Assembly: GCF_001194135.2 (NCBI RefSeq)
Contig: NC_068985.1
Location: 78,392,666-78,456,665 of the forward strand
DNA from: Octopus bimaculoides
Taxonomy: Eukaryota
DNA: 64,000 bases
Reading direction: 5' to 3'
The notes beneath the pieces were generated by a model. That model made no database searches and was not told the DNA's origin. It saw nothing but the letters and a program-made list of their open reading frames with translations. A program made the position numbers and the translations under genes. Each line of letters opens with the position of its first letter. Positions within the stretch are counted from its first letter, which is position 1. Below, piece after piece: positions 6,181-63,173 of the stretch.

Positions 6181-6346
6181 TTATATTTTTAACCAGCTGT
6201 TAGAATAATGATCTTTTGCATCTGCTAAAAATCCAATGTTAATAAGTTTAGTGATGAATTGTACCCATTTCTTCTGTAATCTACTGTGACCCAGACATTT
6301 CAAAGAGATCATGATTCTTGTAAAGTGTTCATAATTGTGTGGGTTC
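6181..6346 (-). CDS. OGFr-like gene 1, terminal coding exon (NPHNYEHFTRIMISLKCLG...NSWLKI*)
   Basis: Acceptor ctttgctgtatacag|G, phase 2; TAA at 6183-6181; HN..TRI..SL..LG motif; AATAAA at 6097-6092 downstream. Confidence 0.92.
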
Positions 6347-9300
6347 CTGTATACAGCAAAGAAATACATTTGTAAAAATCTTTTGTATATATATATATAT
6401 ATATATATATACATATAAGACAAGATATAAATAATGGTTTTGCATATTCATTTATTCTTTCACATTTGACTTACAGCTGTTTCTGATTAGCATTATAGGT
6501 TCACTCATTGATGTGTTTACTCAATTGGTCCATTGATCAGCTTCCAAAGCACTGACCGATGACGATAGCATTAGTTTTTTTATGTTCATTCAATTTTTCT
6601 CACCTGATCAATAGACCAATCGAGTAAACAGATTGATGAACAAACCTATAATGCTTATCAGACAGCTGTAAGACGAATTTGCAAGAATAAAGGAATATGT
6701 AAAGACCATTGTTTATGCCTCGTCTTTTATGCTACTCTGTTCAAAGACCAATCTAACTGGAAATGCAACCATGGGTTTATAATACAGAATGATGATGAAC
6801 TTATAACCTTGATCCCTGCTGTTAGCATATGTGGAGTTCTTTACTAATCTAAGAACATATTTTGTTTGCCTGGCATATTTGTATTAACAGAGAGCTTATA
6901 AAGTATTTTGTTTGGATTGATAATCCCTCATTAATAACTATACCCCCTCATATATATATATATATATATATATATATATATATATATGAGGGGGTGCTGA
7001 AGAGTTCCTTGCTTTAGGAGTATCACAAAAGCCTGGTTGGAGGCCCAATTTTCCAAGTTCTTTTACAGTACTTATAAAAACTGAAGAACCAATAATTTAC
7101 TGATCTTCCTGTATTTTCTTTTACCCAAAGCCAGAAACTTTTCAGCACGCACCTCTGCCACACACACACACATATATATATATATATATACACACACACA
7201 TATGAAGTAAAAGCAGTGCTAGTGTAATAAATATTGTTAAATACATATACTAATGTATATGCTTTGTGTATTTTCCAGTGATTGCAATGGCGTAGTGGAG
7301 TATAAAACTCTCATGTTGCCAGTGTTAAAACAACTTAGTCATGGACAGGTGAGATAACTCACCCTCAATCCCATTTGGGAGTGATGGACATCAATGTTTT
7401 GCCATTTTTGTGGCTTGTCAGCATCATGTACTCACCTGGGTTGAAGGCATATCACCCAGCCAGTCCACGATTTATATGCTCATGGCTCATAAGATCATGA
7501 GCTGGTATGCCCAGAAATTTACATATGAAGTAAATGCAGCTCTAATGTAATAAATATTATTAAATACATAGGCTCATATTACAGAACGCTTTGTGATATC
7601 TGTTCCAGCCCTGCACTCAGAGTTCAAATTTCGCAGAGTTAACTTTGCCTTTCATCTTTGTGAGGTCAATAAATAAAACTAGTGACCCAGTACTGGTGTA
7701 GCTCTCTCTTTCTCTCTCTCTCTCTATCTCTCTCTCTCTATCTCTCTCTCTCTCTCTCTCTCGCTCTCTCGCTCTCTCTCTCACACACACACACACACAC
7801 TGTCACATCTTTGATGTTTCATTGGATCAAGGGGAGAGAACTAAGAAGCTGTCTGAGTCAACTCACCACTACTTAGACTGAATAACAGAGATGAGAGAAA
7901 AAGTGTGAGTATAAGAGGAACCAGTTGTAGTGTGCAAGAGAGAAGATATGTAATGCATATGAATAATGACAGTTAAATAAAAAAACAAATAGCAGGTGAT
8001 CCTTGTGGGAAGGAATATTGGCACTCTGTCAGATATGATGATAAAGGTTCCAGTTGATTCAATCCACAGAACAGCCTACTTGTGAAATTGATGTGCAAAT
8101 GGTTGAGCACTCCACATATATATGTACCCTTAACGTAGTTCTCAGGGAGATTCAGTGTGAAACAGAATGTGATAAGACTGACCAGTGCCCCTGGACTGGC
8201 TCTTGTGCGGGTGGCACATAAAATACACCATTTTGAGCGTGGCCGTTGCCAGTACCGCCTGACTGGTCTTCGTGCAGGTGACACGTAAAAGCACCCACTA
8301 CACTGTCGGAGTGGTTGGCGTTAGGAAGGGCATCCAGCTGTAGAAACTCTGCCAAATCAGATTGGAGCCTGGTGTAGCCATCTAGTTTCATCAGTCCTCA
8401 GTCAAATCGTCCAATCCATGCTAACATGGAAAGCGGACGTTAAACGACGATGAGGATGATGAATGGACTGGAGCAACATGAAATAAAGTGTCTTGCTCAA
8501 GGACACAATGCACTACTGGTTTTCAGACTCATGATCTCACAATCGTGAGCCAAATATCCTAACCTCTAAGCCACTGAAGAAATAGTAAACAAGAAAAAAA
8601 TCAGCAGAAATAGTGAAAGCCAACCAGTTCAGGAAACTGAACTTCATGAAGGAGATGACAAAGGAATACACAAGTGAAATGCTGTGTCATCAAGGACTTA
8701 TCCAACCCATGCAAACACAGAAAAGAAAACAAAAAGTACAATGGCTATGATGGCAATTCTGTGACTCCACAAAGCGCTTGTCATTGAGATACATATGGAT
8801 TTAATAGATTGTTGTTCATTTTATTGGGGTTCATAAATAACTGAACCTGGCCAATGCCAGTACCCCCACAGACTGGCTCCCATGCCGGTGGCACATAAAA
8901 AGCACCATCTGAATGTGTTCGATGCCAGATCTGCCCAACTGGCTCCTGTGCCGGTGGCATGTAAAAAGCACCAACTGATCGTGACCAATGCCAGTACCCA
9001 CTGACTGGCCCCTGTGCTGGTGGCACATAAAAAGCACCCACTACACTCTCGGAGTGGTTGGCGTTAGGAAGGGCATCCAGCAGTAGGAACTCCGCCAGAC
9101 CAGATTGGAGCCTGGTGCAGCCACTGGATCTCCAGACCTCAAGCAAACCATCCAACCCTTACTAGCATGGAAAACGGACGTTAATCGGTGATGATGATGA
9201 TGATGTTGCTAATATACCATCCTCCCTTGTTGCAATCACTAGAGTCTATGAGAGCCTGTATAAGGTTATTTTACTAGCAAAAAATAGCAGCCAAATAGTT

Positions 9301-60985: not shown

Positions 60986-62962
60986 AAACTGAAGATATAT
61001 CTCACTACTGTACTAAACGTTCATCTCTCCTTCTTTCTCGTGTAAACATCAAGACCAAGACCGCAAACTACAAATGACGACGATGGTTTCTCTCAGATAT
61101 TTGACTTGAATTTACTATGCAAGAAAAGAACACAGTTTCTCATACAGCTGGAATTTATACAAGCTTGTAGCATATACCCAAATATCTTTGGAGCAGTACT
61201 GAATACCAACATTGAGCATACAATGGAAAATGAAATGAATGTAGCCGCTTCAAAAAGGAATCAACTCAATCATGTAAATTACATCCAACACTTAACTGTT
61301 ACATATTGAATGTTGTAAAAAAAAATAATAAAAACATAACCTAAAAGTTTTAGTCTTTGTGTTTTTGAAGAACACGATGTTATAATGTCTCTTTTTGGAG
61401 TTGGGATGTATTATATGTGTGTACAATTACACACACACACACACACACACGCACACACACGCACACACATATGCGCGCGCGCACATATTTATTGAAGTTA
61501 AAAATGCACTTGAAGTCTTTTAATTTATTTTATTTACCCAGCCGGTTTCACAACTTTGTGATACGCATGTATTTTACAAAGTAAATGAGGTTACATAAAG
61601 AACAGAGAGGAAACTTTCAACTCTTAAACCATTATACACAAGTTTTTAGAGAATCTATTCTTTTGATACGTTGTTTTTAGACGCATGATTATTCTTTTCT
61701 ATGACTGCGTATGTAGTAAATATATAAAAATAAATATAAATTGGAAGATGTAATGAAGTCTTTCAATCCTATATTTTCCCATTTTCTCACGTTGTCCTAA
61801 CCAAATAATAATCATATTCCATTTCGACCCAGTTTGTTTTTCATCATAAAACACGTTTTATTCACCGTACTTGTTCAGTAGTACATCAATTTAGCGAAAA
61901 ACAAGACCTTGATATTTTGGTGAATTTATTAGCTGCACATTAGTCCAAATGTTTACTAATGAATATTTGCCGGGTACTTTTCTGGAATTTCGTATTTGTT
62001 GATGAACAGCCATTTTCCATTAAAGTCAATCCCGTTTGTCCCGTGCAATTGTCATGACATCGGTCACATCTAAGAATATAAATTAAATTTCTAATGCACA
62101 GGTGAAGCGATTATGTGAAGTATAAATGCAGATATTTAAATTCATAAGCAAAGTTACACCTTCAATATATTGGTTTCAAATTTTGGCACTAATATATTGG
62201 TTTCAATTTCGGAGGAGGGGGAGAGTCGATTACATCGACCCCTATGTTCGACTGGTACTTATTTTATCAACCCCAGAAGGACGATAGGCAAGGTCGACGA
62301 AATACCGCTGCACATTTTGCCCGGCCTGTTAACAGTTCTGCTAGCTAGCCGCCTTACACCTTTAATATACTAATATAGGTTCCTCAACTAGGCCACCAAC
62401 TCTCTTTCTCCCTCTCTCTCTCTCACTTATTCTCTCTCCTCCATCCCCACCCGCTTTACTCATATGTCTGTTTTCCTGTTCGTCTTCTGCTTTTCTGCTT
62501 TTAATCTTCAGCATGGCCTTTCTTCTTGCCAGGGAAATAACTCTTTGATCATCAACCATGAGTTACAGTACCAACGCTATAAACACTTAATTACAATTTT
62601 GCTTTCCTTTTTTGATAAAAAATCTTTTATTTACTTTACTGAAAGGCTTTGTGCACAATACTTCCTCAGCAGCCATCTTTATCTTGTTCAACATAAGTTC
62701 CAAACATCTGACGAGCGTAAGTCTTTCGACCTTACGCAAATCTTGAAGACATGTATGAATGTTCGTTTAGTATGATCGTCATTAAATTATACTATACAAC
62801 CTCGTTATTTCGTGTAATTGCGTACCTTTCTTTTACTATGAACTGTAACCGACCTCTCTTTCACATATGTTCTAGAATTATGTATTTCTGCATATTGACG
62901 AAGCGTTACTCAGCTTAAAACAATGGTGTGTTTCATACTGTCGTTGATAGTCTTTTAGTATT

Positions 62963-63173
62963 TCAGTTATCAAGTAAATTCTGCAACTGAAATTGCTCTC
63001 GCCTGCTCAGTTGCGGAATCCAATAATCGTTTATTGATTCTTCGGCCTTTGGTAGTAATTGAAATCGAACCATATCTGCGAGAAATTTGACGAAGAACAC
63101 TGCTTGTACTTGGAAATCCAGATATCTGAGAGATTCTACCATTCTCGTAATCCGTTTAAAGTTGTTTGGGTAT
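62963..63173 (-). CDS. OGFr-like paralogue 2, terminal coding exon (YPNNFKRITRMVESLRYLDF...DYWIPQLSRREQFQLQNLLDN*); upstream exons probably lie beyond the window
   Basis: Acceptor tttaatttcactttcag|A with the same phase 2 as the gene 1 last exon; gapless alignment to that exon (12/54 identical, including P-x-N, TR, SL, L, V-x-F, W); AATAAA at 62631-62626. Confidence 0.85.

Follow-up and report, generated by a model that had tools for sequence, protein, structure and literature searches.

Introduction

In vertebrates, OGFR is known as the functional receptor for opioid growth factor, with [Met5]-enkephalin binding, nuclear import and growth inhibition ascribed to it; it is located at the outer nuclear envelope, and its domain is followed by a long C-terminal region with imperfect repeats. 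Here we analyse genes with the same domain, OGFr_N, in a 64 kb stretch of Octopus bimaculoides CM046605.1 (assembly GCA_001194135.2), which we call the window. An initial annotation of the window had described one complete five-exon OGFr-domain gene (gene 1) and, upstream on the same strand, the terminal exon of a second (gene 2); a third (gene 3) lies beyond the window end.

The vertebrate pair OGFR and OGFRL1 has the same domain and core motifs (FY.N, W..Y..LE, YIQWLFP, MLDFYG, HN.LRITR) as the octopus genes, and like them the two are paralogues with a poorly understood molecular function, as a 2024 paper states for OGFRL1 (PMC11062026). Genes 1 and 2 differ from OGFR and OGFRL1 in being much shorter (233 and 265 residues), in lacking the C-terminal repeat region, in having a putative N-terminal hydrophobic anchor, and in the absence of the His that is conserved in HxYIQW. 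"OGFRL1-like", their name in RefSeq, is a similarity label only and does not denote orthology to OGFR or OGFRL1.

Lineage-specific multiplication of OGFr_N in a mollusc is also seen in bivalves: OGFr was listed as an expanded family in the Manila clam, with 29 genes (PMC5499747), and several bivalve models or entries hold two or three OGFr_N domains. The bivalve expansion differs from the octopus array in being much larger, in its long and often multi-domain proteins, and in the absence of an N-terminal anchor from those inspected; it is a likeness only, with no relation to the octopus array shown. A decapodiform type, for instance Sepia pharaonis CAE1264559 (238 residues) and transcripts P0013, P0012, P0021 and P0087, is small and single-domain like genes 1 and 2. 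The Sepia protein and P0013 likewise have a hydrophobic segment on the N-terminal side of the domain, and the Sepia-like proteins have a shortened loop of 26 residues. Unlike genes 1 and 2, however, Sepia-like proteins have this segment at residues 18-36 or 44-62 rather than at the very start, together with a near-consensus domain (1/41 departures at family-conserved columns) and a LMLPW.KFLA.LIY motif that is absent from the octopus genes.

Gene 3 and Argonauta hians GAB1598532 share with genes 1 and 2 a spacing of 25 residues between the FYG and HN motifs and, in the case of gene 3, the four domain introns; gene 3 is unlike them in that it keeps the consensus, has a long N-terminal region and is without a strong anchor. 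Our literature search returned no paper describing this octopus array, and the accession numbers gave no matches; Octopus vulgaris OGFR receives a passing mention only (PMC12919962).

The OGFr_N array

We consider it probable, at roughly 0.8, that three OGFr_N genes form a head-to-tail array on the minus strand and that the window takes in the two downstream ones. Gene 1 lies wholly within the window, with its ATG at 28478, and gene 2, with its stop at 62963, contributes only its last exon and 3' untranslated region (3'UTR); five further coding exons past 64000 take gene 2 to window-equivalent position 81130. Gene 3 follows on the same strand about 60 kb beyond the window end, at 78517110-78548123 (window-equivalent 124445-155458), 43 kb upstream of the gene 2 start. 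Record coordinates are 78392665 plus the window coordinate, a mapping that is fixed because the gene 2 locus (L001) overlaps window positions 52963-64000 at 100% identity, the same 204-N gap included. No further OGFr exons were found in the 10-kb flanks fetched with each locus, a scan that leaves about 23 kb between genes 2 and 3 outside.

Gene 1 corresponds to RefSeq XP_014770397.1 (P0001), a protein of 233 amino acids (aa) named "opioid growth factor receptor-like protein 1 isoform X1". Gene 2 is XP_014770405.1 (P0032; 265 aa, named OGFRL1-like), recovered by a whole-library HMMER search seeded with gene 1, and gene 3 is XP_052823768.1 (P0189; 435 aa) on the same chromosome, which came from a cluster among the top HMMER matches. 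RefSeq and UniProt already list all three and annotate the OGFr domain in them, and nothing here is new to the databases; the notion that the genes were hidden is therefore withdrawn, and we regard the array as an ordinary tandem gene family with modestly interesting evolutionary features.

Membership in the family is clear from the Pfam OGFr_N model (PF04664, gathering threshold 22 bits), with which gene 1 scores 113.2 bits (E = 1.5e-32) and the whole gene 2 protein 131.5 bits (E = 4e-38). The same HMMER search found 1411 family representatives at E <= 0.001 among 1.84 billion proteins. Genes 1 and 2 keep the core of the domain (N68, F71, Y72, P80, W92, L99, Y105, W108-P111, M150, L151, F153, G155, R173, N183, R189 and W230), and neither has the His before YIQW.

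All three genes are real and expressed. RNA contigs of run X13 cover genes 1 and 2 at depths of about 690 and 1100, respectively. Among other O. bimaculoides RNA sets, gene 1 was found in none of five (X25, X37, X26, X28, X42) and gene 2 in none of four (X25, X37, X26, X42).

Duplication and origin of the array

A gap-free alignment of the gene 1 and gene 2 proteins extends over 173 aa at 31% identity (BLASTP E = 2e-35), and the terminal exons of the two genes alone align without gaps at 12/54 identity (BLASTP E = 3e-07), with a score reached by 0 of 5000 shuffles. Both genes have their four domain introns at the same codon positions and phases: between PNG and D or A, between W and LFP, at a third boundary (between ESR and MMQ in gene 1, and closing the 70-nucleotide (nt) exon at the aligned place in gene 2), and between QK or QR and xP. 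The internal exons measure 79, 70 and 143 nt in both, and gene 3 has the same four intron positions. The genes therefore arose by duplication at the DNA level, and a retrocopy origin is ruled out by the shared introns.

The arrangement is shared with Octopus sinensis, where gene 2 and gene 1 keep their order and common strand on CM016863.1, with AP5Z1 coming next in the opposite orientation; the annotated range of gene 2 starts at 49041811, and that of gene 1 is 49094790-49117226. The O. sinensis orthologues are 89% (gene 1) and 86% (gene 2) identical to those of O. bimaculoides. Along its entire length, the window is collinear with two O. sinensis loci, L002 and L003, that contain no gaps. 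The gene 2/gene 1 pair is thus shown to predate the split between O. bimaculoides and O. sinensis.

Several proposals of the initial annotation bear on this point. That the pair is an old, retained tandem duplication is borne out by the common strand, the 31% identity, the shared introns and the O. sinensis synteny, and the gap-free 12/54 alignment could be reproduced. The expectation of more members past 64000 proved correct for the remainder of gene 2 and for XP_052823768. The suggested cluster of small cephalopod OGFr proteins gains a third same-strand member, albeit one that at 435 aa is not small.

One alternative holds that genes 1 and 2 are pre-cephalopod paralogues, each with a 1:1 orthologue across molluscs and without lineage-specific expansion. 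The two are merely 31% identical to each other, and each is 35-40% identical to bivalve and even amoebozoan members; nor does the neighbour-joining tree unite them. Both versions of this tree are star-like, with genes 1 and 2 on long, unplaced branches, and the only supported pairing is that of gene 3 with the Argonauta protein (300/300 bootstraps). Since genes 1 and 2 are not joined, the order and age of the duplications are unsettled; long-branch effects are, however, expected in the tree at the present rates. The tandem position of genes with identical 79, 70 and 143 nt exons argues against such an ancient origin, as does the absence, among the 1.84 billion proteins, of any representative outside the genus Octopus at least 50% identical to gene 1 or 2. 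So does the FYG-HN spacing, which inspected by eye is 25 residues in genes 1, 2 and 3 and in Argonauta, 26 in Sepia-like proteins and 27-28 in the others inspected. The length of this loop suggests that all three genes originated within cephalopods, a matter that the tree does not resolve, and we consider separate pre-cephalopod origins rather improbable.

Sequence evolution and possible function

Comparison of O. bimaculoides with O. sinensis gives gene 1 a ratio of nonsynonymous to synonymous substitution rates (dN/dS) of 0.93, and gene 2 one of 0.96. Non-coding DNA of the region differs between the same two species by 0.072 substitutions per site and 8.3 gap openings per kb (over 23.7 kb), and the coding divergence of gene 2, at 0.069-0.072, is about the non-coding rate. 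In the 1494 nt of coding sequence of the two genes there are nevertheless zero indels and zero premature stops where about 12 gap openings were expected (Poisson probability about 4e-6). Near-neutral dN/dS combined with zero indels therefore indicates that the reading frame has been kept while residues change almost freely.

It might be argued that genes 1 and 2 are decaying duplicates, still transcribed and no longer selected as proteins. The dN/dS values and the near-neutral coding divergence of gene 2 would agree with decay, and genes 1 and 2 depart from the family at 9 and 8, respectively, of 41 conserved columns (at least 80% conserved), against 3 in gene 3 and a median of 3/42 among the aligned sequences. 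Gene 1 moreover has a 3'UTR intron whose junction lies 170 nt past the stop codon; under the vertebrate 50-55 nt rule, a junction that far past the stop would mark the mRNA for nonsense-mediated decay, yet the contig depth is about 690. Decay does not readily explain the unbroken frames, the splice sites, all of which are intact in both species, or the very high depth of the RNA contigs. Furthermore, the core fold residues are kept (WLFP, ML.F.G, R..R), the AlphaFold2 model of the domain is confident, and the O. sinensis orthologues are annotated with intact frames; O. vulgaris has a partial gene 1 model (163 aa, truncated). We judge decay to be unlikely.

Both gene 1 and gene 2 start with a helix that is about 20 residues long and strongly hydrophobic. 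The 19-residue hydropathy, which peaks at residues 1-2, reaches 2.56 in gene 1 and 2.61 in gene 2; the helix lacks a charged N-region, and lysines come after it. In the AlphaFold2 model of gene 1 (mean predicted local distance difference test score 87), the helix occupies residues 2-21, and 10-residue blocks of the domain have means of 84-98. An N-terminal hydrophobic segment is present in 14 of the 174 Met-initiated family sequences inspected, mostly these octopus or Sepia-like proteins, and absent from the other 160. Neither gene 1 nor gene 2, inspected by eye, showed an import signal rich in lysine or arginine. The proteins stop soon after the domain, gene 1 ending 3 residues past the last conserved Trp and gene 2, 18 residues past it.

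A PDB sequence profile search for a solved OGFr_N structure gave no match, and the best Foldseek match to the gene 1 model had E = 0.29 and a template modelling (TM) score < 0.3. With no significant PDB match, the fold therefore gave no functional clue.

We read the helix as a signal anchor because it is long and uncharged and is then followed by lysines, and because of the position of vertebrate OGFR at the outer nuclear envelope. We infer that genes 1 and 2 encode signal-anchored proteins with the domain facing the cytosol on the endoplasmic reticulum (ER) or the nuclear envelope. In the mechanism proposed, the helix would, in one tissue, fasten OGFr_N on the cytosolic side of the ER or outer nuclear membrane, where the domain would probably be a binding module whose surface is free, or pushed, to change. 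Taking these features together, we speculate that genes 1 and 2 are octopod-specific, neofunctionalised offshoots of a conservative OGFRL1-like gene, that is, anchored modules produced abundantly in one tissue, with surfaces under diversifying selection. Such selection, of the sort that acts on reproductive, secretory or immune proteins, may have operated with fold and frame preserved. We put the proposal forward tentatively, as a possible account that we think is more apt to be wrong than right.

Several points weigh against our main account of the array and its anchored proteins. A dN/dS near 1 would fit loss of function too, and the helix could be a cleaved signal peptide, in which case the proteins would be secreted; membrane topology and location are here read from sequence alone. 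Among the RefSeq predictions is a gene 1 isoform that lacks the anchor (P0156). "One tissue" stands here for one RNA library, X13, whose tissue is given in code, and the 5' exons of gene 2 rest on locus L001 and P0032, not on reads. Finally, the neighbour-joining tree unites genes 1 and 2 in 4/300 bootstraps and does not place them with gene 3.

If the proposal of neofunctionalised offshoots is true, the array is a natural contrast between one conservative and two fast-changing copies, and could help to show which residues of the domain matter. The array could in this way guide experiments on the essential parts of OGFr_N, although its biological value is modest.

The conservative copy is gene 3. 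Gene 3 is 54.5% identical to its Argonauta hians orthologue GAB1598532 and, given this identity, appears to evolve more slowly. It has an N-terminal region of about 240 aa that is rich in Q, E, K and T and carries the lysine-rich stretch KIRKSKKKKKRRE, with no strong hydrophobic anchor (hydropathy 1.31). The 70-nt exon of gene 3 (LFPNRVAGLNRQAFCLNDYEIQ) is present twice in locus L004, at 28227-28292 and 30005-30070, in 100% identical copies separated by 1.8 kb. Either the exon was duplicated locally very recently or, in a locus that contains 5283 N, the second copy is an artefact of the assembly.

Gene models and transcripts

The exons of genes 1 and 2 that fall in the window are as follows.

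28413-28546, minus strand: gene 1 exon 1, 5' untranslated region (5'UTR) and first 66 nt of coding sequence (X13 RNA loose end, donor gtgagt)
24884-24943, minus strand: gene 1 exon 2, 60 nt, linker with CCKGC cysteines (tblastn of P0001, X13 contig, GT-AG)
20682-20799, minus strand: gene 1 exon 3, 118 nt, start of the OGFr_N domain (acceptor site, joined by RNA to exon 2)
18318-18396, minus strand: gene 1 exon 4, 79 nt (loose ends of exons 3 and 5, GT-AG)
14260-14329, minus strand: gene 1 exon 5, 70 nt, encodes LFPTPEDTT... (X13 contig depth 691, loose ends into exons 4 and 6)
11540-11682, minus strand: gene 1 exon 6, 143 nt (loose ends of exons 5 and 7)
6011-6346, minus strand: gene 1 exon 7, 166 nt coding, stop 6183-6181, then 170 nt of 3'UTR (X13 contig covers 6010-6346)
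2921-3172, minus strand: gene 1 exon 8, 3'UTR only (GT-AG intron from 6010 to 3173)
61513-63173, minus strand: gene 2 last exon, coding 63173-62963 (69 codons and TGA), then about 1.45 kb of 3'UTR (spliced RNA contigs)

The abundant gene 1 transcript consists of seven coding exons and a 3'UTR exon. The coding parts, at 28478-28413, 24943-24884, 20799-20682, 18396-18318, 14329-14260, 11682-11540 and 6346-6181 on the minus strand, measure 66/60/118/79/70/143/166 nt, have GT-AG borders and translate exactly to P0001. Six of the seven were matched in the window by tblastn with P0001, a UniRef protein to which the exons of the initial annotation had led; this search recovered the 70-nt exon that a motif scan had missed, and the first coding exon was found from an RNA loose end. 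All six coding junctions and the 3'UTR junction are carried by X13 contigs at a depth of about 690, a junction being read as a contig loose end that maps exactly onto the neighbouring exon.

On either side of exon 2, its contig (depth 692) continues as a loose end, one matching exon 1 and the other exon 3. The former placed exon 1: it maps to 28413-28442 and the contig extends 134 nt more, the upstream end being a lower bound. Exon 1 has its ATG at 28478-28476 and encodes MIAVLLFLIFLLVGLVYKYLFS, the candidate N-terminal hydrophobic anchor. Because the 60-nt exon is linked in the X13 contigs to the 118-nt exon on one side and to the ATG exon on the other, the transcript assembled at a depth of about 690 in this library is the seven-exon form. 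The five-exon open reading frame (ORF), starting at a Met within the 118-nt exon, is identical to the RefSeq predicted isoform X2 (P0156, 188 aa).

The five exons of the initial annotation, with their sizes, GT-AG borders and RNA junctions, were recovered unchanged, whereas its description of the gene as complete must be amended: two 5' coding exons, which supply the predicted membrane anchor, have to be added to the model, and the 3'UTR exon had also been missed. The annotation was right about the second terminal exon and its phase-2 acceptor, the AG being at 63175-63174 and spliced RNA being available from two species. Its proposed OGFr_N profile check on 62963-63173 succeeds with the whole protein (131.5 bits) and falls short with the exon by itself (18.2 bits, cut-off 22).

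The 3'UTR junction of gene 1 was read from both sides, the loose end at 6010 mapping to 3145-3171 and that at 3174 to 6013-6042. The 3' end of exon 8 is undefined because the contig breaks at a repeat (2912-2979). At the other end, a (CA)n microsatellite at 28521-28560 lies in or just before the 5'UTR, and the transcription start is undefined because the RNA contig stops inside it.

Two minor forms of gene 1 occur in X13. One, at depth 11, joins the 70-nt exon to repeat-derived sequence at 17144-17173 in place of the 79-nt exon; the other, with a depth of 29, leaves the intron that follows the 118-nt exon unspliced (window 20560-20709).

The last exon of gene 2 has a ttcag acceptor in phase 2 and its TGA at 62965-62963. 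A 2293-nt X13 contig of depth 1100 spans 61513-63175 and continues in frame into the upstream exon, which ends ...NFRERFDNFQ ahead of an R across the junction, and the same junction is present in contigs of X18 and X19 from a second species. The exon together with the RNA loose end (80 residues) is 100% identical to P0032 residues 186-265. Poly(A) signals are found at 61534 (AATAAA) and 61524 (ATTAAA). Six coding exons of 72/223/79/70/143/211 nt make up gene 2 in locus L001.

That the frame at 62963-63173 resembles an OGFr exon by chance and is no part of a gene, as its sub-threshold score in isolation and a word-indexed protein search that returned no matches for the 69-aa exon would allow, is exceedingly improbable and is refuted by the spliced RNA contigs of two species that pass through the exon, by its identity to the C-terminus of XP_014770405, by the score of the whole protein and by the 0/5000 shuffles.

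In O. sinensis, the last exon of gene 2 (L003 28756-29059) continues through the site at which the O. bimaculoides frame stops, giving 11 additional residues (…LLDNSDSMKQTFVFS). An 882-nt X13 contig of depth 6 lies in the last intron of gene 2 (63709-64000), runs off the window end and is without an OGFr-like frame.

Other features of the window

Assembly gaps affect no exon. Two, at 15290-15675 and 20178-20452, sit in gene 1 introns and RNA contigs splice straight over them; the remaining five fall between genes 1 and 2. In the O. sinensis loci L002 and L003, which cover every place that matches a gap, a 14-protein OGFr panel found the known exons only, none of them at these places. A hidden exon or third copy inside the gaps is ruled out by the splicing of RNA across the intron gaps and by the O. 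sinensis sequence, which is free of gaps here. The lengths of the N runs are poor guides to size: 386, 275 and 673 N at 15290-15675, 20178-20452 and 43016-43688 compare with about 1.4, 1.2 and 0.1 kb in O. sinensis.

Window positions 2300-3300 are transcribed at depths of 180-440 in X25 and X37, both without gene 1, and overlap the gene 1 3'UTR exon. Because the convergent neighbour in O. sinensis is AP5Z1 (L002, from 38353 onwards), this transcript may be a long 3'UTR of AP5Z1 antisense to the last exon of gene 1; the contigs carry no strand.

Transposon remnants are present at 31066-31779 (minus strand; hAT dimerisation domain, E = 5.6e-4) and 55836-56189 (plus strand; Mos1-type helix-turn-helix (HTH), E = 7.2e-4), both matches being slightly under the Pfam cut-offs. 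A transposase-type HTH at 15676-15828 (minus strand) abuts the gap at 15290-15675 and scores 27.8 bits with HTH_23 (cut-off 24.6) and 18.8 bits with a Sleeping-Beauty HTH model, under its cut-off of 43.

The window also has short high-copy repeats. One at 62172-62507 sits within the 3'UTR of gene 2, that at 2912-2979 breaks the assembly of the last exon of gene 1, and another lies at 5746-5883; for all three, word depths range from thousands to 85,000, in RNA as well as in DNA runs and in several species.

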